Shown: in pieces, positions 7,801-49,500 of the stretch
How positions within the stretch are numbered: the stretch's first letter is position 1
How the letters are laid out: each line of letters begins with the position of its first letter
Assembly (NCBI RefSeq): GCF_902652985.1
Contig: NC_047024.1
Location: 24,118,001 to 24,182,000, forward strand
DNA from: Pecten maximus
Taxonomy: Eukaryota
Length of the DNA stretch: 64,000 nucleotides
Direction: 5' to 3'
Program-made: the position numbers and the translations under genes
The notes under the pieces: model-generated
What the model saw: only the letters and a program-made list of their open reading frames with translations
What the model was told of the DNA's origin: nothing
Databases searched by the model: none

Positions 7801-8980
7801 CAGAGACCGAATTTATCTTACTTTTTCAATTTATATGATTGTTACCGAAAACTTAAAATTGATGACAGAGACATGCATGTACATATTGATTATGGTATGT
7901 ATGTATGAACTGAAGAGGCACACTTGCAGGGATCTGTGTTTATGCCATTATGGTGATATATATGAGCAAAATAAGACATATTTCATGTATCCAATCAACG
8001 GGAAAATAAAAAAAAAGTCACCCTCACTCCTTCACTTGTGGTCTTACAACATAAATATAACTAGCATATATCGTGTGGTATTTTTTCAACATTACTTTTG
8101 AAAAATGATAATGAAACAAAATAAACAAGCAAGCAAAACCTTAAAACCATATTATAGTGGGTTTATTTATTTATTTTTTCACAAAGTAATCAGTGATCAA
8201 AACCATTGATTTGCATATTTGGACATAGGCCTACATGATCTATAATAAATGCCCTAACTTGACCGTATATACGTTAGTATTATAGCAAAAAACAATGCAA
8301 GCGGAATTTGCCTATTTGGAACAATGACATTGTTTAATATGACAGTTTCTTTATTCTTTATATCAAAGACATAATATTCAAGCGTTATATGACGTCAGCC
8401 GAAGACGTTCCATGCATGATGGGACCACTGATGATCGTTTTTATAGTGCCGTCACACTGAAATGTCATACCAGTAACGGCCGTATAGTGGCATATATAAC
8501 TCGGGCATAGCATTAAAAAGTAGTTTGGCAATTGAGTGGAAACACATTTCTCTAATTTTGCAGGAAATCAGTCGCTTCTGCCCACATAACTCATTCAGCA
8601 GTCTGCAGAATGTTCCGACACTATCTCCACTTATTTGCAAATGCAATGGATCAAGGTTGGTGTTTCTTTCTTCTCTTTTAATAGATATGAATTTATTATG
8701 TCAAACCAAATGACGGTTGACGCTCAGCGGAACAGACATAGAAGTTTGTTGTTAATGTCCTTAATAATATGTATATCATAACATTCACCAAAAAATCAAA
8801 GCGCACATGTATAATACTTTTTTTGTACCATCTAATTAAAATTGGACTTGTAATTTACGTTCCTCTACGATACATTGCACTTGTTAGATCTTGCATTGCA
8901 GTGTATGGTAGAGGAATGGAAATTACAAGTCTACTTTTAATTAGATAGCTGTATAATATAGCATGTACAACAACACACTT

Positions 8981-9772
8981 GTGTATTGGTACGACAACAC
9001 ATCTGTGTATTGGTATGACAACACATCTGTGTATTGGTATAACAACACATCTGTGTATTGGTACGACAACACATCTGTGTATTGGTACGACAACACATAT
9101 GTGTATTGGTACGACACCACATCTGTGTATTGGTACGACAACACATCTGTGTATTGGTACGACAACACATCTGTGTATTGGTACGACAACACATCTGTGT
9201 ATTGGTACGACAACACATCTGTGTATTGGTACGACAACACATCTGTGTATTGGTACGACAACACATCTGTGTATTGGTACGACAACACACCTGTGTATTG
9301 GTACGACAACACACCTGTGTATTGGTACGACAACACATCTGTGTATTGGTACGACAACACATCTGTGTATTGGTACGACAACACATATGTGTATTGGTAC
9401 GACAACACATATGTGTATTGGTACGACAACACATCTGTGTATTGGTACGACAACACATCTGTGTATAGGTACGACAACACACCTGTGTATTGGTACGACA
9501 ACACACCTGTGTATTGGTACGACAACACACCTGTGTATTGGTATGACAACACATCTGTGTATTGGTACGACAACACACCTGTGTATTGGTACGACAACAC
9601 ACCTGTGTATTGGTACGACAACACACCTGTGTATTGGTACGACAACACATATGTGTATTGGTACGACAACACATCTGTGTATTGATACGACAACACATCT
9701 GTGTATTGGTACGACAACACATATGTGTATTGGTACGACAACACATATGTGTATTGGTACGACAACACATCT
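8981..9772. repeat. 24-bp minisatellite, about 33 copies (GTGTATTGGTACGACAACACATCT)
   Basis: Direct tandem repeat with CATCT/CACCT/CATAT variants and no spacers. Confidence 0.97.
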
Positions 9773-31688: not shown

Positions 31689-33317
31689 AGTGTAACGTCA
31701 GGAAACGTGATGATGGGGAGATGTTGGTTGCATACTGTGAGTGTACATATTTTCTCGGCAATTTCATTTTAGAGCTTTTCCCGTTGAACATCCTACGCTA
31801 AATCATGGTTTCGCTAATTGCTTTGTACTGTGAGTGCACGAATTCGTCATTTCGCTAATTTGTTTAAATGAGGTGACTCTACTAATTTTGAGGGCGACAA
31901 AATATTTATAGACCAATAAAATGCTATTGTCCTTTCTTTGTTATCTTATTTGTCAACGGTTAAGGTTAAAAATACTAGTTTTTACATTTTTCATCAGGCA
32001 TATAAATTATTTCCGTTTTATAAATTTGCAATTGCAGTCACGATGTGCGCAATGCTATATCGTCAATGTAACTCGTATGCCACATATCGATTGAATGTAT
32101 TTTTAATTAACATAAAGATAAAAGGAAATGTCTTTTTTATTTTCATTATCATTTATCTGGTTAACAATAAGTTTACGTGTTAATGACTTGATATTGAAAT
32201 AGTATAATCATATATTATTATTAATACACATATTTGTATGAAACAGCAGTGATATTTATTATTAATTAATCTTATTATAGATTATATTACGAAATAAAAT
32301 GAACTTTACAGGAAATTCACACATTCTAAACATATCAAGTGTTGGTTTTTACTGTTAGAAATATGATGATACATGTATAATAATATGATTATATATTTGC
32401 AACTTAAATTTTAGGAGTTTATGTTTCGAGAGTGTTCTATCAGGTAAGTTACGAATGTTATTTTGTATATAGATATAAGTGAAAATCAATATTTCCAATG
32501 CACTACATGTTTTATTTCCAATCTTGAACAATGCATTAGATTAGAATCCTTTGGTCGTCATCGGAACAGTAACGTTGACATGGAGAACTGAAATGTATTA
32601 AGAAGTATGAATATAATTAAATTGAATCATACATTAAGGACAGTTATTTTATTAGAAATACAGTTACTGTAAATGGCAGTGTTTTTCATAATGATCCAAA
32701 TATTTTATTAGGACTAAATGTTTATGAAAAATATCTGACAATATATGTCATCTCGGTATACTATATACATCAATTGTCTTTTTAAATACTTATACGTAAT
32801 ATGAACATCCCTACACATGATACTAATGGTCAAATTACGATTAACTGGACCATATTCCATATGAAATATTACAGCAAATATAACATTCAGCATTCATCAA
32901 ATATTAAACATCACATTCACCAAATATAAAACGCCACATTCAACAATAAAACAAAAACTTGTATAACCATCGAAACGGATAGCTGCTATATATTTTCATT
33001 TGATGCTGCAACGAAATCAAGATTCTTGCTTCTTTGGAGTAGCTCCTTGCATCCTAACATTTACTTAAACCTCCCATGATCTTGTATGGCGTTTTCCCTA
33101 TCACCAAGGCGTATTTCTAAACGTTTACAGTAATACCTCTTTTGTTTTTAATTCATCGCTATGACTAACCCTTTTTGCACTATTAATGAAAATTCAACAT
33201 ATATATATAGCATGTTGCTATTTCAAATAGAGTTTTCCTGATCTCTCAGTCGTTCCATTTTTACCTCCTTCGTAATATCTGGTATTAAATAAAGATCTAC
33301 CCTGCCTATGTCCTCAA

Positions 33318-33600
33318 TATTCACCATTCCACAACCTTCACCATTCCCCAGCCTTCACCATTCCACAACCTTCACAATTCCACAACATTCAGCATTCCAC
33401 AACACTGGCCATTCAACATTTACCATTCTCAACATTCACCAATCCGCACAATTCACCCTTCCCCAACATTCATCATTCCACAACATTCACCATTTACTTT
33501 TCCTCAACGTTCACCAATCTGCAACATTCACCAATCCACAACATTAACCATTCCACAACATTCACCATATCACAGCACTCACCAGTCATCAACATTCGTC
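33318..33600. repeat. Degenerate low-complexity repeat (about CCATTCCACAACATTCA)
   Basis: Repeated C/A/T-rich units of about 17-18 bp. Confidence 0.75.
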
Positions 33601-33758
33601 ATGGTATCAAACTTTCATACTCTTTCAAGACCCTTCATATGAAATCATAGTTAGTAAGACATTTTCTATTCATAAACTTTTATTATATTATCTAACTTTC
33701 CCGGAACATTTTTTTTCAATGATTTTGATTCTCTCTTAATTAATTTTACCTTGCTGTC

Positions 33759-36700
33759 CTACAGCGTTGCGTATCTTCTGCATGAATGACAGCAGACATT
33801 TCCATAATGGATAGTTGCACACATAGCTTTTCTACTCCCCTTGAACATCGAGTAGACGATTTGGTTGCACTTGCCTGGGGATAAGCTGTCCCCTTCGCAG
33901 GGTTCTGATTCCTCATCCTCTGGATATTCGCCTTTACCCTGGAACGCTGGTAATGTAAACAAAACGTTATTGTTTAATACATTTCATCCATCGGTCTATT
34001 TTGTTTATGTTTTTTATTTACATCATTCATCCCCATTCACTCATTTTCGCATTTAAACACACAGGAAAATATTAATCCGCGGCCAAATCACGCATTAAAG
34101 GATATACAACTTTAAATGTCTTATTTTAAGAAAAAAAAAAAAACAGCTTCATGATGTTAATGGCTAAATACCAAGAATAATGCATTATGTTTAAATTAAC
34201 TTTAAATGTCTTATTTGAAGAAGAAGAAGAAGAAGAAGAAGAAGAAGAAGAAAACCTCAACAGCTTCATGGTGTGAATGGCTAATACCAAGAATAATGCA
34301 TTATGTTTATATGAACCTAATAATTCACAGACAATTTGTATTAAATGAATATCATTTTCCCCCTCTCCATTTAGTTATGTGCGCACACCAAAAAACTAAC
34401 ATTTCAACAGACAGATTGTAAATGATTTCATAAATAGGAATGCTTAGTCAGAAAAATTTGACAAGCATATCAAGTGAGCAATATTCACCTAGTTCCCTTA
34501 GTTTCCTGTTGTCGGCTCCTTCAGCTAAAGCAGTAGAGCAAAAACGGCAACAAGACACCACGTTGTGGGGATTCGAACAGAAAATATGGGGCATTCCTCC
34601 GTGGTCGTAGTATTTATTCATCATCATTTTGCGGCAATTTTCTTCTCCGATACTATCCCTACACTTTTCGTCGCTGTCGACATCGCGTCTCTTACGAAGA
34701 GGAGAATTGTCCATTTTGATGGTGTCTCTTACACCATTTGATGTCAGTTTCCTTCGAAGATAATCTTTCTTACTGCCCTTATATCCAGAACCCTTGTTAC
34801 CATTGTTTATGAACTTATCATAGTAATCATCATCGTTAAAACCATTGAAGTTACCTATGCCAAGTCCATCAAGCACCTTCTTTATATAATCATCACTTTT
34901 CCTGTCTTTGCCACCATAGCGAAATCCATCGAGCAACTTCTTTATATCAATGTCGCCATAATCGCCTTTGCCATTTTTGTTGCCATAATCGCCTTTGCCA
35001 TTTTTGTTGCCATAATCGCCTTTGCCGTTTTTGTTGCCATAATCGCCTTTGCCGTTTTTGTTGCCATAATCGCCTTTGCCGTTTTTGTTGCCATAATCGC
35101 CTTTGCCGTTTTTGTTGCCATAATCGCCTTTGCCGTTTTTGTTGCCATAATCGCCTTTGCCGTTTTTGTTGCCATAATCGCCTTTACCGTCTTTGCCACC
35201 GTAGCCATATCCACCGAACATATCCTTTATATAACCATAGACTTTGTCCCCATAGCCACCGTAGCCAAGCATATCCTTTTTGATATCATAATCGTATTTG
35301 TCATCCTTGTCACCATAATCGCCTTTGCCGTCTTTGCCACCATAGCCAAATCCATTGAGCATATCCTTTACATAATCATCGACTTTACCATCATAGCCAC
35401 CGTAGCCAAGCATATCCTTTCTTGTATCGTAATCGCCTTTGCCGTCTTTGTCAGCATAGTCAAAGCTATCGAACATATCCTTCATGTAATCATCAACTTT
35501 ATCATCATAACCGTCATAGCCAAATCCGCCGAGCATATCTTTTTTGCCGTCATCATATTTACCGTTTTTGCCATTACCTGGAAGGATAAACAAATTGAAA
35601 TCAGTCATCCGAGATATATTGGTTGAGATCGTGTTTTGGATGTACGTATGTATTATGATTGGGAGATATTTGGTGAACACTAGCGATTACTAATAAAATT
35701 CAGGTTAGCGGATCATCTTTTTCGGGTATAAATTGTAGATGATTAAGCTTTATTATGATCTTATGATTACAAAATCAATGAAGTAGTCTAGTTTAATCCA
35801 CAATAAAATGACCAAACCAATGTTGTTAAGGTAATAGAAATAGATTAGCTATTGGATGTCTGTGGTGTGTTATAATCATGTCATGAACGGTATACAACTG
35901 TCATATGTATTATTTTTTCCAAGGCAACAAAAGCTTATATGTAAAATCTCTCATAAAGTTACCAAAGCTTCAAGACCCCACCTTGATATGAATTATTTTG
36001 AAATATTTCATACATTGGTGCATAAAACATTGAACGGCATGAACTATATTAGACAACACCAGTATTATGGATATTATGCTTTCAATAAAAAAGGCCATCA
36101 TATGTGTCATGTTGTAATGTAATCGCTGTGATAGACATACTCACCGCCGTACCCGCCGTACCCGCCATAACCACCGAAGATATTTTCGATTGCCTTATAA
36201 GGGTGTTTCACTAAATGAGACAACGTAAAAAGACGGAAAAGCATCAATAAGTATAACATTACTCTTGAGATTAGTTCATGAATTCATTTTATACATTTTT
36301 TAAATAATAAAATGATTAGATTATAATAATGATAATAATACAAATTACCACATGGCTTGATGCGTTTCATTTGATTAAGTAGTTACGCCGCGTAACAAAT
36401 TCCCAAATGAACCATTCTAAAAAGAGGTAAACCGTTTGGTAAAGATTTCTTTTCATTTATTGTTCCATAGCTCCAAATGTAAATTATCAATAAGCTTGGT
36501 TCCTAAAATGTAATCAATCTACACAGATGCATCATCGGGATATTAAGTGATAATTGTCTGATTCTGTTAATGAAGGTATTGCCTCAATATCATATTTGCA
36601 CTGAGGAAGGGCATACAGAAAAAAAGGAAATTGTCAATGCTTGCAGAGAAATAGTAATTCAGAATATTTTAATTTGATACTTACTCCATTCGTCAATCAA

Positions 36701-38719
36701 GAGATGGTTCCAATCCTTCCCCACTCCGTATTTGCAGAATGTACAACACATTCCAGCATACTTTTTATCTTTACACATAGCCTTTATATCTTTTTTGTAT
36801 ACGTTGTTATGAATATCAACACACTGAGAATATTTCATTGTATCCTTACATTCGACCGTCAGGTACATATACTTTATCTTCAGATCTAAATAAATAAAAT
36901 AAATAGAATAAAAGATACGGCTTCTGTAAAGCATTATGTATTTTCATATGCATATTATGATGGATATTTGTTTTATGGCTAATGGTGTTAATTAGTGATC
37001 ATTCATGCGAGGGCTAAATACGCATGTGAAAAGCGTTCAGAATTATCGCAAAATTAAGGGACTTAAATATTGTTTTCTTTTTCATATCGACATTATAGAA
37101 TTATGAAAAATACCTTAAAGTCTATCTTTTTTTAGTCAGTCATTATGAAATGTTGCTTTTTGTCGAAAAAGTGGAATTTGCAGAAAAAAATCGTTTTCGA
37201 TTATGAAATAATGTTGTGAGAGTGTTAAAACTGCTTGTCCTATTTTTAACAGTTTATCTATTAACTTTCCAATATAGAAAGTGTAACACCACCCATTTCA
37301 AAAGCGAACGATACACTGATAAGTCACAGGGACGATAGATATGATAGGAATAATCTATTCTAAGAATATAAATACAATGTACTTGCTGAGTATGTCATAA
37401 TAAAGTCTTGAACTCGCTAAACTCTGTTTCAGAAAAGCACATCTTTTAGATTATCTTTATTGGTTTAAAAACTTTACAGTCAGGTAATTCTTAACAAATT
37501 TCATCTTTAGGCATATTGACGATAACATATATGGGTGAATTACTACTTACTAATAAGATCATCCTTATTTCCGATGCCATTTTCACAAGCGAGCCGTTGG
37601 ACGCAAAATTGACAACAGTCGTCCATTCCGGAATAGCCGAAACACATGTCGTAAAGTTTTCCTTTGTATTTGTTATTAAGAAGTCCTTCACATTTCTTCT
37701 CCCCTATCCTGTTCCTGCATTCCTTCGGCTTTGGCATCAGGTCATAATCGTAGCCCTGTGTAGCTTTAATGTAAACAAATTAGTTGTGTATGATATTGAA
37801 AAGTACATGCAATCAGTTTTGTCAAACATCAAGGAAAAATCAATTCAATCACTCTTAACTGTTACCACTGATCCATTCGTCACAAAATCGGTAACCACTT
37901 AACAATCACCACTGGTGTTTTCACCATCAAACCGGAAACCCTCCAACAATCATCCCACACCCATTCACTGCCAAACCGTTAACCATCTCGCAGTAACCAA
38001 TGATCCATTCACCACCAAAATGGAGCCCACCAAACAGTCACCACTAATCCATTTACCACCAAATCGGTAATCGCCAAACAACCACCACAAATCAAACCAT
38101 TTCTACCATCAGTATTCAGTAATACCTCCACCTAAAGTTAAGTAAACATTATTCCGTTCACCAGTTAAATAAGTTACTACTAAATTGGTTACCACTAATC
38201 TTGTCCTAGCAAGCCGATTGGAAATACCACAATAATCAATTCATCGCGACTAATTATATAAGGAAGAGCAGTATCTTGGTAAACGAGAAACCCTATTTGG
38301 TTAATTAACAGATAATTGAATGTTCAGTTTGATTTCCGTCTATTTTCCATGATGGAAAGAATGGTTGTACCTTTCTGTCTGAATCTATCCTTAATGATGC
38401 AACGATGATATTAGATAGATGAAATCAATTTAAACCAGACTGTGACTAAAGTAATATACATTTTATTGCTCTCGACGGCAATAAAATATTGAAATAATAT
38501 AATGCCCATGATACTGTCAGAAGAAATAATACAATACAGGATTGAGAAAACCAGACTCAAACAGTTTACATTTTAACAAAAGCTCTAAATGGACAACTAC
38601 AATTAACTAATTAATATTAGAATATAACATTTATGTTTTAAAATATATGAAAAATAAAACTTACCTGTGATGAATCCAAATATAACAACGAGCACAAATA
38701 GCTGCACGGGGACGGCCAT
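33759..38719 (-). CDS. Secreted 603-aa protein with four six-Cys (PLAC-like) modules and a Gly/Asp/Lys/Tyr repeat region; complement(join(38665..38719,37551..37763,36685..36885,36145..36210,34489..35577,33759..33946))
   Basis: Signal peptide MAVPVQLFVLVVIFGFITATQG. All five introns are phase 1 GT-AG and the internal exons are multiples of 3 (213, 201, 66, 1089 nt). There are four C-x8/9-C-x15/18-C-x8-CC-x2-C modules, GKGDYGNKN x8, and LRRK and RKRR basic sites. Confidence 0.88.
34955..35190 (-). repeat. 27-bp coding tandem repeat (GKGDYGNKN) x about 8.7
   Basis: TTGCCATAATCGCCTTTGCCGTTTTTG tandem on the + strand. Confidence 0.95.
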
Positions 38720-41700
38720 TGTGCTGGTGTGTGTCCAAAGTGTATTTGGAAGCACGGCATATTGAATAACAGCTTCTTTAATCAATTAGTGAACACATTC
38801 TGCTTTAGGGTAACCGCGTAGTTGCAAAGAGAGCCCAGTAATGGTTTTATGATTTCACTGGACAGTCCCGCGTCAGTAGGCCAGAATACAATAGGTATGA
38901 TTTGATAACGATCTCATGAATCCCGCCAAAGTTAATGGAATTTTCATAACAACTGCCTGGTATAATTGTCATAATATCTGAAATTGGCTACCAGTGCATA
39001 ATTACTGAGCAATTTTTCGACAATGTAGAAATTCATATTCATACATGTTATTTTTTGGCTTTACTTCACATACAATTTATCACCCTTTTGTTATGTATGA
39101 AGATAATTCTAAGATATTTAGACCGAGTTGGAGGCATCTTTTAAATCATCCATTCCTGCAGATGTTTGTTTGTTTATACCTAATGGTGCTGTTTATATGT
39201 GTGTTTACCATGGACATTTTACACGAAATATTAACCAGGCTTTAAAATATCATTTTTCTCCGTATTATAATTGATGATCTATAGTTAATGGATAATTAGG
39301 AATCTGTTTTTTCTTTTCTTTTTAGACTTCTGTGATATTCTGCTTGTTTAGTTTTAAATAGGACCAACTAAACGACAAAACCATTCGGTTCTGTATATAC
39401 CCACTTTGTTTGACATTCTCCCCTTCTTGCCTGGTTTTTAGAGGTAGACATGGTTAATTAGGTAAATATTTCGGAACAGATTGAGTAGAGATAAAAATAT
39501 TTAACATTTCGACAATTTAGATTGATTTATATATATTTTCGTTCGTTTTTGTATCTGGTGGTCCATCCCTTCCCTGGTAGACTGACAGATAGTATTGTTG
39601 ATTGAGCAGAAAAGACAGGTATCCTTCTGAAACCCCTGGTCTTATTCATTTTTTTTCTCAAGAGTCTGTTTTGTTTTAATTAATGCTTTGCTCTATCTTA
39701 TTGATTTTAAGTTGGAAATACGGGTGCATTCGCAAGTCGAAATTCTCCCTTTTGTTCATCAAATGTTCTGAAATCAATATTCAAAAACTTTGCGTGTTCA
39801 TAAATTTAAGTGATAATTACACATACACTTCATCAAATCCTTTGCCCTTAATTCCATTAGAATTGTTGTTTTAAAAGATAACTTTTTTCTGGTTCGCACA
39901 TTGTATGGATATTTCAAAATATCTTACCTTTTAAGAAGACTTTATAAGGGCTTTTCCAAATATTGAAACACCATAATATATTTTCTGTCGTCAGTTTGGA
40001 CAAACGAAACTGGTGGAAATACTCTGAACAATATACACTTAGTCTGGGTACAGCGCATTCATAACGTAATAATTTTGAAAGTCTGCCTACAAGACAGAGG
40101 AAGAAAAAAATCGTTTGCATTAAATGAGGACTGATGCCTAATATTTGCGATGAGATTTGGGCTCATCGGATGAAAGATTTTATGAAAATGTTAAAAATGA
40201 AAAACTTGTGTGTAAGCATTTCATTCTATAAAAATATTATCACAGTGACTATTTCCTGTCCATTGCACACCTATTTTATGCACTGTTCGGCATATTTGAT
40301 GCAAACCTGTTTTGATGCCATCAGGGTCACGTAATCGATCTAGCTAGATCTTTATGAATCTAAACAAATGAAATATTGCATGTTGGCTTGAAGTAAATCG
40401 AGGCGCAATATCTCCATACGAACATGTTTTTTCTTTCTTTATTTTTTACACAAAAAAAAAAATGTTTCTTAAAATCCTTACTTGTCCAGAATATAAATTT
40501 TGTTAATGAAAATGGCCATTTATAACATTGGGCAATTCTACACGAACCGAGCATATATATTCTGATATTTTTTACAGGTTCCATTCACTACGTTAAAGAG
40601 GCCGACCGGATGATTTAATATCTCCATATGGTGAATCTGACATGATCAAAGACTTCTCCGTGCCATAAAATCGGCGATAGCGTTTCCCAGATGAGATGGC
40701 AATATATAAATATGGTGGTTGACATATATATGACACAAAAACGCTTAATAGAAGGAGGCATGCGGTGTTGCTTCAGTTATTTTACGGGTCACATAATTAT
40801 ACGGTATGGGCGTCACAATCTTTTACATGCAAACTGTTATAGCAAACCCCAAAATAGATTAGAGAATATAGTTTACAATATTATTTTGATGTATAATTTC
40901 TGAAGATATTGGATATCCGAGACCATTTTCTTGTGTTCCCCTAGATTGTTGTAGCTTTGATGTTACCAAAACATTTTTGGCATCCAGAAATAAGAATATG
41001 CAGATGTAGAAATATATTTGCTTTTATAAACAGGAGTGTATACATCACAATATGTGCTTTCCACATACATATTTTATGACATAAATATGATATCATATAA
41101 CTTTTATATCACTTGCAATATAATATTTTAATCATTGTCTCTGTTAAAGCGACAATGTTTCATTTTAATAAGAAGTTCCTTGTCGAGCAGTTTTGTGTAA
41201 CAGGAAGGAAGCACAAGTACGGGTTTTCGCCCTTAAATCGTTACTCCTTCCAGGGCTGCGTTGCTTGGTAAGGTACAGAGAGTAACAGCAAAGTTCAACG
41301 GCAGGTGCGTTATCTCTCTAATTTGCTTACCCTTGCCAAGGCTATAAGGGACATAATTGTGGATAGAAAACAGCAAGACAGTTCAGATGTTTCTTATCAA
41401 AAGAATAAACAAAAAAATGGTAACAACATTATGAACACGAATTTTATTGTAAACATGAATGCATATATCTAAGCTGAATTATTTCATGTTTTATCATCTA
41501 TTGAAGCGCCCTGATACTGTATGAAATTAATATGTATCTTTTGATTCAGTAACATACTGTCGGATTGCGAAATTCATTTAATTAAATACTTAGCTATATT
41601 CAACATTATCCCGTGAACATGTCAAAAAAACAACAACAAAAAACAATGAACAAACCCTCATGACTTGGTTGTGACGTCACATTAAAATGTAATGTCGTTT

Positions 41701-43211: not shown

Positions 43212-46200
43212 TCAATCACTTGAGAACCCCTTCATCCAGCGTCCCTCGAAATTATTCAGTTTTGCTCTTGTCTTTTTTCTGATGGCGGCTCCTTTAATTC
43301 GAGCAGACGACGCCTTTCTTGATTTTTTCGCAGTGATGCTTGACGATTTTGAAATGGTTTTTATTTTTCTTGGTAGGACCTTTTTTGTGGTTTTTGAAAC
43401 ACGACATTTTCTGGATCTCTTAATTGTGCATCGACGGCACCGTTTCCCACCTCTCAAAAGGACGATGGTGAGATAGCGACAAGATTTGGGTGTGGACACT
43501 GGACACTGAAGCTTCAGACAGGAAGTAACGCGGGTTGACGGGACGATCCTTGTTCGATGAATTTCTGACGGACGTTTGCCTTTGTGTAGGGAGATATTAC
43601 CTTTGGTGGAAGCCATCACCTTCGTGCTAACTTTATGAAGTCTGTTTTTCGATGCAACAGCGGCCCTTCCGGATGCTAGCCCTGTAATGATAGAATATTA
43701 GGTAAGAATAACTAGAAATTGAATTTATTTTTCTTCAATATTGTCCCCAATTAAAAAAAAGCTTTATAAGTGTATCTTCATTTTTTTTTGTCCATTACAA
43801 CAATCTTAAGCAGATAAATCAATCTTTCCTTATTGTATAGTGTAACAGTGTATTGATAGGCCAAACCAGTCTGTCCTATTTCTATTGTCTTCCTTTTCCT
43901 TTCCCTGTCAATTTAAGTTGGTTGGACATAATTCTATTGCAGGTCACGATAAACAAGACAAAACGATATTGTAATACACATACAATGTCAGATATCTGAA
44001 AGACACAGCGCCGACAAGAAACAAGGAAACACCGGCTTCTTGATCATTAAAGTAGACATTAACGGCGTCTAAACATGAAAGTGACTATGTACTACATGAC
44101 GTATCATCATGATAATCCTATTCAGCCAATCACAAAGTGTGTAACATTCCGTCTTCCAAGGACAATGTACAAATGAACAACTACAGGTAAATGGCCATTA
44201 CTGACAGTAAACAATGAGTAGTATGGAATCTGTGCAATATTATTATAAACACGTGGATAATACAAGAAGCAATAAGACATAATTGAAAATGATATAATCT
44301 AATCTATCTTGTAATACTAAGAACAATACCAAATGCATAATTATATAATGCATGGAAGTAATTTGCTTTGACTATAGTTATATATTATAGACATTTACTT
44401 ATCTTTCTTTGAAGCATTGTTAAAAGGTTGTTTATTTGTGTTTGGAAATGTAATGTTTTTCTTCGATGTTTAGACTGCGGATTTACTAAAGTTTGACTCA
44501 TTAAAAACTGTCTCATAGAATATTTGAAAAAGACAATATCTGTCAAATTATTCATTTTAGATGCATCTTTTTTTCGTGACATTATTCCATACTAAAAAAC
44601 AGACAAATGTAATACACTTGCAAACAACTTTGCCTTACAGATTTGTTTCTTATTGGTATTTATGATGTCATGAATACGTAATCAATATGAATAAACATAT
44701 GAACTGAAAATTATCATTTTTTCTACATTAATGCATAGAAACCAGTTTCAATTGATCGCGGTTGTATGTAAATGCTACACTGATGAGAGGGCTGTGCTGC
44801 ATATTTGCTTCGGTCAGCAATGCTGTCTAACGGGAGTATGATATGCAATATTGCCCTACCATAAATGTTATGTTTTCTTTATTGTCCCCGACTGTCATGT
44901 CTAGCACATCCCGCTTGTCAACAACGCCAAACCTTACTGTCGCCATACCACGTCCATGTATCGGTGTCATTAACAATCAGTGTTCAATAGACTCCCAAAC
45001 ATACTATATATAGAAAACATATCGCTAATAGCTGACAAACGCAATGAAGACCTTTGATTTTACCCTGACAGTTTACATTTATCTTAACTAATGAGATTCC
45101 CTGGTTTGATTTTTTGGCTTAATGCACGATAAATCGTGGTGACAACTGTCGATAAAGCTGCCAATTAAATGCGTCCTTCAACGAACTGAATTTCAATAAA
45201 CAAATCGTAGAATGGTAAACTAATAATTTCGTCGATGGCAGAAAAAAGATAACCTGTAATCATGGATATGCTTATACACTGTATTCCAATCAGTCGTGAT
45301 GTATCAACATTTTACATCATAACGTCACTCATCTCAATAATGCTGTTTATTTACACTTATTTGATTGGCACTTATTTCGTTTACTAGCCATGCGTTACTC
45401 TTTTCTACATGACTATTTGACGTCGTGACAATTACATTAGATTCTTCCCATAAAAGGACCATTATGGTTGTGTATATTACCAATAAATGTTCCTCATTTT
45501 TTTGCATTTATTGTCATCTATCAATATTGTCATATTTTTGAAAAGATCGACCTGTGGGAAAGTGGGCGTCAATGATGCGAATCCTACACGATTCTCACCT
45601 CGAAAATAAGTCTAAAAACAATATTGCACGTTTTTTTTATGTGTCAGGAGGTGTGTCATTTCAAGAAAGTAAAATCTAAGTTAGTTTACGATTTCATTTT
45701 TTAAATTAGACCCCAGTTTCATTAATCTTCCTTAAATTAAGAAAAATCAATCCAAAATTCCATTTTTGTTAAAAAAATAATCTACAATTTTCCATAAGAA
45801 AAAATTATTTGTGTTAAGGAAAGCATCCTTATCAAGAAACTTTCCATAAATTATGTAATGTTCTCTCTTGGAATTATTACCCTTGACTAACATTCCCGAT
45901 ATATAAGTTAACCATCACGTTAAAATTCCTTGACACGTTTTCTGTGATTATCTTTCCTACTTTTGCGCTATAAGAGAGAGCCAAATTAATTAATCGATTA
46001 TCAATTATGTTTTGTGCTTGTTTGATGTGTTATTTCACATGCCGCTTAATTATAAATATAAGAAATGCTAGGTAACACAACGAACAAAATTGCATTGATT
46101 TAAAATGATAAGCGTCTCTTTATTAAATGGTTACAGGCTGGTGATGTTGTCAGTTCCTTAATAGAATTGTCTTTTAGATGCGTCATCTTTCTTCTGCTTT

Positions 46201-46599
46201 GAAATAAATTTCAAACTGAATATCACTGATAAAAAACCGATAAATGCATTATGCCCAATAGCTACAGAGGAATAAAACAAGAACACACAATCTTGAGGTA
46301 GGGTAGTTTCTCGGCAACAGCACGCGTTTCCTTAGCCACATGTGGCTCCAGATGTTTTGTCTGTCATAAAACTAAAATTTCTTCACTTAGAAAATATAAC
46401 AGACAATGTAATCTCATGGGATGAAATATGTCGTCCAAAAGGACCGAGTGATATTATATTAATGATAAATTACGATGATATATACATGATTATATAAAAC
46501 CTTACCTTGACAACATGGCTGGTACAGCGCTAACACAATGAAAACTACCATCAGCAGTCGAAAACAACCAGGCATCAATCGGAGATTATCCATCCTCAT
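43212..46599 (-). CDS. Secreted, highly basic six-cysteine protein, 187 aa; complement(join(46506..46599,43212..43681))
   Basis: Exon 1 encodes MRMDNLRLMPGCFRLLMVVFIVLALYQPCCQ and ends G|gtaag. Acceptor ttacag| at 43681 continues in phase into the K/R/S-rich ORF that ends at 43212. Cys spacing is C-x4-C-x7-C-x13-C-x2-C-x7-C. Confidence 0.72.
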
Positions 46600-49500
46600 T
46601 ATTTCTATCAGTCTTTTCACTTAATTCCACACAAATATAAACAATTTCAAATCCTTAATCTTGAATTTGCCATAAAAGTTAAAATAAAATGTTATTGTCA
46701 ATTGTCTTAAAGGTTTACACTGTTGATTGCAAAAGTATTGAAACTGTATTACACCTGCCCGCTTCCGTCATTCAGCGTAAACAGAGCTTCCTTGTTGGCG
46801 GTGTATCAAAGCAATGTTCATCCTTCGACAGTCACCACTGGTGTAGAGCCTTCCCTATGCACAGCTAGAGTATTAGTAGTGGTTGTAGTGCAGCTTGGCG
46901 ATCCGCGACAACGGTAGTGCATTAATCGTCCAAAATTATTACAGTGTAATGACTCGGCGGCAATAAAATACCGTTTTAATGTGCTAACCATTTTCCGTAA
47001 AAGACAACGAGGATATGTGTTTTTCTTGTGTAGACTTCCGGTAATGTTTATTGATAGCTTGATGGATAGATTTGGTTACATACACAGCTACACAGACATC
47101 GTGTTCGTCATGCGGATCCGATTGTTAGTGATACGCAATCGTCACAGTTCTTATCTTGAGTAATTGTCATGAGCCCACCTGTTTCAGATAATGAAAATAT
47201 AGATTTAAGTGTCTTTATTCTTCCATTGTTTAACATTTCGTAAACAACCGCTAGGAAATCTTTATGAAACAAGTATGGCAGGCTACCACTTTGATTGAAA
47301 TGGATCATAACGCAAAATATTTAAAGTAAGTTCAAATGTATTTGAAGTTGGGAAACCATTTTTCAACCTAACGACACAACATTAATAATTCAGCTTTTAT
47401 TCAAAATGTAAGTATTCTATGTCAATTCAATTCGAAAACAGGTGCACGGACGGATAAAGAGTAACACTTCCAACCCAGGGCATAGAATTGGGAGAGGTTT
47501 CGAAACAGTTTTTGCATGCTCGTATAAAAAAAGGGTAGAGCAGACTTTGCTTTCGTCCAGACAGTAATATTATTTAAAAAAAAATGTTTTTTTTCAATTG
47601 AACAAATATTTCCTCTTTAGATGTACCAGCATCATATTAAAAAGGACATATTGATTCATTTAAAGGTGCTAATCAATGGTGCGTATTCGTTGCAATCCTT
47701 AAATATTTGATACTTTGATTTATCGAAAAACAAGAGTTATACCTTTTTGGTTATATTTCAGGTAACTATTGAAAGGAAGAAGACGAGACAAACTGCAGCA
47801 CTGTCATCTTAACAGGCAAATAGTGAAAATAACATACAGATAAGAGAAGAGATTGAATGTAAGTTAGATTTTTGTTTCCCGGCTTCAAAAGGACAGCTCT
47901 CGAAAAACTACAAGAGGAAAATATTCAGTAAAGTAACTTATGCTATTCTTCTGTTATTTAGTGATTTCATTAAAATCATAAAAAATATGATACTTAATAT
48001 CTGTCAAAGCAAACTTATTCGTTGACTCGTACTACAAATGCTTCCAAAAGTTTAAAAAAAAAAAGGACCCGTAGCGTTATCAGACAATAATAATTGCTGT
48101 AATGAATGCATTTTAGCGGTAGTCTTATTAATTCCAGACTTTTTATTTTGTATTTTACTATACGTATAGCAAGGGCTCCAATTATTTTGTATTTTACTAT
48201 AAGTATTCATCGTTGTGCTAATCAGTTTAAATTTAGTTATACGCTTAAATGTGAATCCGCCAAAATAATTAAGTTTACAGTATATGCTTTCCAGAAATCA
48301 ATGCCTGTGAATTTGAAGATTACATACAAATTATGCACCGTATTATGTCTAGCTGTACGCGTGTTGACTAATAAAATAACCCCCCAAAAAACAAAGAAAA
48401 ATATGAAAGAAATGAATGAGCCGAAAGCCCACTTTATACGTTCAATTTCAAATTGAAAGTGTGAACCTGACACCCTGATGAAGTCATTACGAATCTTAAA
48501 AATCTTTCGTCACGTGTAGTATATCAAGTAAATAGTTAGAAAATGAATCCCTACAATCCATTCAAATTTCACGTTCTACCCCGTATATTGATTGTAATAT
48601 TCAACAACTGTTGTGTGAATTAGTGATATGCAATTTTTGATCTAGCTGTATGCACAATTTGATCCTTGTAGTTTCTTCTACATTTTTTTTATAAGTGCAT
48701 ATTCGTCGTTATAAGTCTCAAAGCACAAACATTTACCTTCTACCCCCCCCCCCCCCCCCCCCCCACACCCCCTGTCCAGTTTTAATGGTTAGCATAATTG
48801 TTGCTAAGTGGTGTAAACTATTCTTTAACATCAATTTCTGATGTATTGGAATCTGTGCCTAATTCTCAAATTCTAGCAAATAGTCTAGTTGTTTACCCTA
48901 AATTTTACTGCAGTATACCGACTATCTAAGGATGATCTGGTTTGAATCAAACACTTGATATATTGATATATATATATATACATTTGTATATACCAAATAC
49001 GGATGATGTAGTACAACGTTATACTTACCTACAAGCCTTGACGTAGACGTTAAAAGCAACACGAGGTTGCTCGTTTATCGCGACGAGACCAAAATATATT
49101 CCTGACAATTAATGTTAAACAATCACTGCATTTAAGACGAATCATCCACTTATATAACTTTAAGAAATATCAAGTTTTCAATATGCATTTTGATTTGATT
49201 TTAAGAATTCTCTATGGAGTCTTCCTGACCCAGATATTGCCATTCACAAACGCATTTGATAAGGTGCGGAAATTCGAAATCATTTCATTATAATATAATG
49301 AACACCCTAGTATATATCAGTATTGGCGTCCTTCGCTGTCTGTAAAACGTCATACTTATGCTCGGGTCAGATGACTTCAGATGAAGTCTGTGATCAGTGC
49401 AAATATGAGTACTACGTCATTGTTCACACTATCTATGACAAAGTAAATTGTTATTACCTCTATGTTCTTCTTTAGTTATAGAAAACAAAAATCTTTATTA

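Follow-up and report, generated by a model that had tools for sequence, protein, structure and literature searches.

A scallop-restricted, secreted Pecten maximus protein with six-cysteine modules around a tandem-repeat core

A 64,000-nucleotide window of the king scallop (Pecten maximus) genome, contig C10:24118001-24182000, was analysed with respect to a gene on the minus strand at window positions 33759-38719. The gene, LOC117336280, is real, expressed and spliced, and its protein of 603 amino acids is secreted and modular, with end modules under constraint and a free-running repeat core between them. By sequence comparison the family is restricted to scallops and is not an orphan. From the predicted models, we read its four six-cysteine modules as a long-loop variant of the PLAC/ShKT fold class, nearest to PLAC in sequence, and we tentatively favour a role for the protein in the extracellular matrix.

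Gene structure and transcription

The gene comprises six coding exons separated by five phase-1 GT..AG introns. Exon-by-exon translations are identical to a 603-amino-acid database protein, all five junction residues included; this protein, RefSeq XP_033752652.1 ("uncharacterized protein LOC117336280 [Pecten maximus]"), was returned by a search with the module 3 region of exon 5. All exons lie on the minus strand and are given in window positions. Coding exon 1 (38665-38719) begins with the start codon at 38717-38719 and encodes a hydrophobic signal peptide, MAVPVQLFVLVVIFGFIT, followed by the first base of an Ala codon; the translation matches the N-terminus of XP_033752652.1, orthologue N-termini are similar, and a GTAAGT donor stands directly after 38665. 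Exon 2 (37551-37763) carries module 1, with its Cys core at 37603-37719 and the spacing C-x8-C-x15-C-x8-CC-x2-C, and exon 3 (36685-36885) carries module 2, with its Cys core at 36734-36850. A conserved KHPYK motif and a GGYGGYGGYG linker are encoded by exon 4 (36145-36210). Exon 5 (34489-35577) holds the Gly/Asp/Lys/Tyr/Asn repeat core, basic motifs and module 3 (Cys core 34538-34663, C-x8-C-x18-C-x8-CC-x2-C). Exon 6 (33750-33946) contains module 4 (Cys core 33780-33899, C-x9-C-x15-C-x8-CC-x2-C), the stop codon at 33759-33761 and 9 nucleotides of 3' untranslated region (3'UTR).

Assembled RNA contigs from four studies were aligned to window positions 33300-39100. The joint 33946|34489, linking exons 5 and 6, was present in all four runs, and the joints 35575|36143 and 36210|36685 in two or three runs each, with both joints flanking exon 4 found in contigs of two runs. 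Contigs in two runs also bridged exon 3 to 37551 in exon 2. Every RNA joint reads CT..AC on the plus strand, the form that GT..AG takes there when a gene lies on the minus strand. No RNA contig of the four studies reached exon 1 or intron 1, and both rest on the RefSeq model and the conserved N-terminus of the orthologues. An earlier sequence-only reading of this DNA had proposed the six-exon model, and it is borne out by the agreement of the exon translations with XP_033752652.1 and by contigs from the four studies, in which exons 2 to 6 are spliced where introns 2-5 had been predicted. The signal peptide, GGY linker, repeat core and LRRK and RKRR motifs of that reading are all present as described.

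Its transcript model holds for the six coding exons and was extended by one. RNA contigs also exit at 33750, 9 nucleotides beyond the stop codon, and their loose letters map uniquely to 32558-32587, a segment preceded by a tttcag acceptor and succeeded by an AATAAA signal at 32511-32516. Because the loose ends map uniquely behind this acceptor and ahead of the signal, the mRNA has a seventh, 3'UTR-only exon (32480-32587, minus strand, 3' end approximate), reached from a donor after 33750 and starting at 32587.

Eleven of the 24 listed Pecten maximus runs, belonging to the four studies, hold 16-35% of the words sampled from the stretch. In the first four the figure is 31-35%, near the roughly 36% of the stretch that is exonic. 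The remaining 13 runs, from six further studies, hold almost no words of it, which agrees with restricted expression.

Three simple repeats were recorded in the non-coding parts of the locus: (GAA)12 in intron 5 at 34217-34252, a 44-bp array in intron 1 at 37857-38093 (5.4 copies, 64% matches), and a 17/51-bp CA-rich array at 33500-33597, just downstream of exon 6 and within the 3'UTR intron.

The six-cysteine modules and their fold class

Alignment of the four 40-amino-acid modules gave six invariant Cys in the arrangement C-x8/9-C-x15/18-C-x8-CC-x2-C. All five species seen have kept the HGGMPHIFC..NPHN..CC stretch at the centre of module 3. Across scallop genera the modules are under purifying selection, with nonsynonymous divergence (dN) of 0.15-0.28, saturated synonymous divergence (dS) and a dN/dS ratio (omega) of about 0.13-0.15. 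The pattern is not due to chance, since it is conserved between genera at this ratio and at saturated dS, and the four modules first noticed in the sequence are upheld.

The modules fall outside formal PLAC membership on both score and Cys spacing. Against a gathering cut-off of 26.4 bits for Pfam PLAC (PF08686), scores were sub-threshold at 13-19 bits (best 15.1-18.6, best E-value 2.9e-4), were obtained for copies of module 4 only, and covered just the last 17-19 profile positions (13-31 of 31). Modules 1-3 gave no PLAC hit, either in exon-by-exon scans or in the full-length orthologues, and no Pfam domain reached its threshold in the exons or full-length orthologues. For comparison, the Pecten genome supplied nine genuine PLAC domains and twelve genuine ShK domains. 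The nine PLAC domains follow C-x6-8-C-x8-C-x8-CC-x2-C, whereas the modules have 8-9 residues in loop 1 and 15-18 in loop 2; the sequence-only reading had put the second loop at about twice the PLAC length. The modules likewise end in CC-x2-C and not in the C-x3-C-x2-C of ShKT domains, and gave no Pfam ShK hit (PF01549) even at E<=10. A sequence search of the PDB with the module profile returned nothing even at E<=10. In hhalign comparisons the modules matched PLAC with a probability of 47.9% (E-value 1.9e-4) over 21 columns, in the C-terminal half only, and ShK with a probability of 0.4%. The scallop PLAC and ShK domains, compared with each other by hhalign, gave 24% over 32 columns.

AlphaFold2, run on a 12-row module alignment, predicted module 1 as an all-helical four-helix mini-domain with a predicted local distance difference test (pLDDT) score of 86.7. 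The sequence-only reading had proposed comparing one module structurally with PLAC and ShK. Foldseek found no PDB match for the model, whereas an exhaustive VIA-align search found seven chains at Z>=2 among 48,161, six of which are ShKT peptides or CRISP Cys-rich domains: Nak1, aurelin, OspTx2a-p2, the MMP23 toxin domain, Tpx-1 and ShKT-Ts1 (Z 2.1-2.9, 35-36 residues, root-mean-square deviation 2.4-3.0). A search of features from the ESM protein language model ranked ShKT clusters highest for each half of the protein (0.82-0.88), which has the standing of a lead. Structure neighbours from the ESM Atlas were uninformative, since the Atlas's own model reaches a pLDDT of only 0.43.

A genuine scallop PLAC domain was modelled in the same way (pLDDT 92.6), and all ten of its matched chains among the 48,161 PDB chains were ShKT or CRISP domains (Z 2.6-4.3). 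The module and PLAC models have the same order of elements and match the same ShKT/CRISP chains; no PLAC structure occurs among the PDB matches. Because the genuine PLAC model also matches ShKT and CRISP domains, describing the modules as PLAC-like does not conflict with describing them as ShKT-like. The term "PLAC-like" used in the sequence-only reading is supported in part. The resemblance is genuine in the C-x8-CC-x2-C ending, hhalign gives a probability of 48% over 21 columns and the predicted helical fold class is that of modelled PLAC, but the Pfam scores are all sub-threshold and confined to module 4. The models further suggest that PLAC and ShKT share one fold. Such a fold would tie the C-terminal domains of ADAMTS and papilin to the ShK toxin superfamily, and the modules would be a natural example of this mini-fold tolerating a doubled loop.

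Distribution, repeat core and basic motifs

A profile was built from 12 modules of the window and the orthologue loci and searched exhaustively against 1.84 billion representative proteins. It returned this family only, together with a fragment from Mizuhopecten yessoensis that holds modules 3 and 4 (OWF37326.1) and one Logan assembly. Three further hits (P0005, P0007 and P0008) were rejected as unrelated repeat proteins without the Cys pattern. Word-based searching gave full-length orthologues in Ylistrum balloti (382 amino acids) and Argopecten irradians (618 amino acids), and three such searches, with the module 3 region, the whole Ylistrum orthologue and the repeat core, returned scallop orthologues only; for the core there was no significant relative outside the family. 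The architecture of XP_033752652.1 is kept in Argopecten, Ylistrum, Mizuhopecten (seen as a fragment) and the Logan assembly. The Logan contig is genomic and contains the exons of modules 3 and 4. It shares no similarity in DNA with the Pecten locus and therefore comes from a more distant species.

We call the family scallop-restricted because the profile search gave nothing outside the scallop family. The protein had been described as apparently orphan, which goes too far: the gene is annotated, as LOC117336280, and orthologues occur in at least three other named scallops and one Logan assembly, although the profile search of 1.84 billion proteins gave nothing else. No full-length match to a well-characterised family emerged from the word-based and profile searches.

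In the Pecten genome, the profile found the four modules and, at a distance of 1.06 Mb on the same chromosome, one additional weak copy. This fifth module (C10:23054897-23055022, plus strand; L007:1501-1626) has exactly the spacing C-x8-C-x15-C-x8-CC-x2-C and resembles a terminal exon in that its open frame is closed by a stop; its profile E-value is 3.3e-4, it has no Pfam hit, and a 1680-amino-acid open frame is located 3.5 kb upstream of it. A short tandem repeat at window positions 8961-9095 (minus strand), translating as CC-x-TNTQM units, is no module and was picked up by the Cys-pattern scan as a false positive.

Argopecten irradians has two tandem copies of a cassette that joins exon 5 (core and module 3) to exon 6 (module 4), and every Cys in them is intact (L001:12709-14115 and L001:16519-18678). 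The annotated Argopecten products of 500 and 618 amino acids use one cassette each, and their 3' ends look mutually exclusive; in Pecten and Ylistrum the exon 5-exon 6 cassette is single. Upstream of LOC117336280, in the same orientation, a Lys/Arg-rich, secreted-looking protein is encoded at window positions 43212-46620 (minus strand), with a Cys pattern unlike that of the four modules. In Argopecten and Ylistrum a conserved counterpart of its last exon, 61% and 75% identical respectively, stands immediately upstream of the orthologous gene, so that the two genes form a conserved pair.

The repeat core is a fast-evolving tandem repeat with no folded-domain signature, and is probably disordered. 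Tandem Repeats Finder detected a 27-bp array of 9.1 copies, 98% identical, at 34951-35195 (minus strand), encoding GKGDYGNKN, inside larger and older units of 114/141 bp at 35146-35523; RNA contigs break inside the 27-bp array. The core is highly charged and hydrophilic (Gly 25%, Asp 17%, Lys 17%, Tyr 12%, Asn 9%), varies in length from 95 to 330 amino acids between species, and can barely be aligned.

Basic motifs lie on both sides of module 3, placed by the sequence and by the positions in the orthologues. RKRR (residues 473-476; 34685-34696, minus strand) is a candidate proprotein-convertase site just before module 3, and RKLR (residues 536-539; 34496-34507, minus strand) stands between modules 3 and 4. 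The motif before module 3 reads RKRR, RKRR, RRRR and RERR in the four named scallops and is a minimal RVWR in the Logan assembly, and the motif after it reads RKLR, RKRR, RKRR, RERR and RKKR in the five, within a conserved NR-[KE]-x-R-x-L-[AG]. Furin-type convertases recognise R-x-x-R or R-x-[KR]-R, and motifs of both forms are conserved in the linkers flanking module 3. Since R-x-x-R motifs are conserved on both sides, they suggest convertase processing around module 3, a putative step that is added here to the earlier account of the protein.

Possible roles and comparison with known systems

The protein looks like an extracellular scaffold because PLAC/ShKT-like modules flank a fast-evolving Gly/Asp/Lys/Tyr repeat core. 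We give this role, as a scaffold or matrix component, somewhat less than an even chance, and from its composition a structural or adhesive function is plausible, in agreement with the load-bearing or adhesive polymer proposed in the sequence-only reading. The low-complexity core would be the material-forming part and could be cross-linked through Tyr (3,4-dihydroxyphenylalanine (DOPA) or quinone chemistry) and Lys, and its Asp and Lys residues may pair charges or bind Ca. The modules, predicted to be locked by disulfides, would form docking ends that bind partner proteins. A furin-type convertase might cut at the conserved R-x-x-R before and after module 3, which would detach modules 3 and 4 from an N-terminal fragment of ~52 kDa, in the way that the shell protein Pif is split at RMKR.

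Several results weigh against a scaffold. In the word-based and 1.84-billion-protein profile searches the module was absent from all deposited byssal and shell proteins of scallops, and these searches found no sequence similarity to the Sbp series or MSP-1, returning uncharacterised orthologues only. A literature search with six accessions and locus names found no paper naming the gene or its orthologues, and the text of papers on the scallop foot secretome and the Pecten shell proteome contained nothing matching the protein. The core sequence is not conserved; the specific core chemistry is not conserved either, since the core of the most distant homologue is basic and rich in Gly, Asn, Phe and Tyr, not in Asp. 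The fold-search Z-scores of 2.1-2.9 are also low, because the domain is tiny.

The conserved basic motifs could instead belong to a polyprotein precursor of soluble ShKT-like peptides, from which a convertase would free modules 3 and 4 (~7 kDa each) as ion-channel modulators, antimicrobials (as aurelin) or signals, leaving the core as a spacer or pro-region. The motifs occur on both sides of module 3 in five of five species, module 3 has the longest invariant stretch, ShKT toxins, aurelin and the MMP23 toxin domain are among the matches of the predicted fold, and Argopecten has two tandem copies of the cassette made up of core, module 3 and module 4, which serve alternative isoforms. Modules 1 and 2, however, have no flanking basic sites, and a 300-amino-acid tandem-repeat core with a conserved Gly/aromatic/Lys bias would be odd for a spacer. 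With no ShK match at the sequence level, and with one gene and one weak extra module in the genome in place of an expanded gene family, we consider such a precursor unlikely.

A soluble protein in a surface coat or gel, like the Toxocara mucins, would also place a hydrophilic core between paired six-Cys (ShKT/SXC) modules, which would bind non-covalently, the role being protective, lubricating or immune and not load-bearing. The layout of signal peptide, low-complexity region and paired ShKT modules is that of Toxocara canis Tc-MUC, as outlined in PMC9477421, which cites Loukas et al. 2000. The highly charged, hydrophilic scallop core would suit such a protein, but it is not Ser/Thr/Pro-rich and is therefore not a substrate for mucin-type O-glycosylation. 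As its Tyr/Lys/Gly bias would better suit cross-linked scleroproteins, a coat protein seems quite improbable. That the locus is no functional gene at all (a chance chain of open reading frames, a pseudogene or an annotation artefact) would fit the lack of RNA contig coverage over exon 1 and of any Pfam domain at threshold, but is excluded for practical purposes by spliced RNA from four studies with intact frames, by orthologues in several genera under purifying selection at a dN/dS of about 0.13-0.15, and by the conserved gene pair with the upstream neighbour.

The scaffold and peptide roles could also be combined in a bifunctional, scallop-specific precursor. Its four modules would represent a new long-loop branch of the PLAC/ShKT fold, with a furin-type convertase freeing the two C-terminal modules as soluble ShKT-like peptides and the N-terminal fragment of two modules and core entering a cross-linked material, perhaps with the polycationic neighbour as charge partner. 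Taken as a whole, we hold this to be rather improbable, and no unusual mechanism has yet been shown at the locus. Should the structural role prove true, the protein would be a previously undescribed, lineage-specific building block of scallop extracellular material, and GKGDYGNKN and the related repeat chemistry would be of biomaterials interest.

Among known domains, PLAC (PF08686) is found at the C-termini of ADAMTS/ADAMTSL proteins, papilin/lacunin, PACE4 and PC5/6. The modules share with it the six Cys, the C-[KR]-D start, an identical C-x8-CC-x2-C second half and the same predicted helical fold class; PLAC is their sole Pfam signal, and module 4 is C-terminal, as PLAC usually is. They differ in loop 1, which is 1-2 residues longer (8-9 vs 6-8), and in loop 2, which is 7-10 residues longer (15-18 vs 8) and bears an extra short helix in the model. 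The scallop protein also has no protease, TSP1 or Kunitz context, and it contains four copies, two of them N-terminal. To ShKT/SXC (PF01549) and the CRISP Cys-rich domain the modules are related by predicted fold, ESM feature neighbours, the C-x-D start and their use as repeated extracellular modules, whereas the ending (CC-x2-C vs C-x3-C-x2-C), the Pfam result and the hhalign probability of 0.4% set them apart from ShKT.

In overall layout, Tc-MUC-1 to -5 of Toxocara canis are similar, with a signal peptide, a repeat core of low complexity and paired six-Cys modules of ShKT fold, as described in PMC9477421. The mucin cores, however, are Ser/Thr-rich and glycosylated while the scallop core is rich in Gly, Asp, Lys, Tyr and Asn, there is no sequence relation, and the animals belong to different phyla.

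Mollusc matrix and scleroprotein precursors include Pif (with RMKR cleavage and an Asp/Lys/Arg-rich Pif80), the Gly/Tyr-rich shematrins and KRMPs, and the mussel foot proteins. They have in common with the scallop protein a charged or Gly/Tyr-rich repeat core, a signal peptide, a dibasic motif, fast repeat evolution and lineage restriction. The trematode eggshell proteins, rich in Tyr, Asp, Lys and Gly, offer a further analogy, although the literature search did not return the repeat. No sequence similarity to Pif, shematrins, KRMPs, mussel foot or eggshell proteins was found in the word-based and exhaustive profile searches, and in contrast to mollusc matrix proteins the scallop protein has no VWA, chitin-binding or EGF domains. 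The comparison with DOPA-type sclerotised proteins rests on core composition, with 12% Tyr and 17% Lys. Set against these systems, the gene was already annotated and its architecture has analogues, and what is new is a module variant within a known fold class. The gene lends itself well to targeted proteomics and in-situ studies in Pecten, Argopecten and Mizuhopecten.

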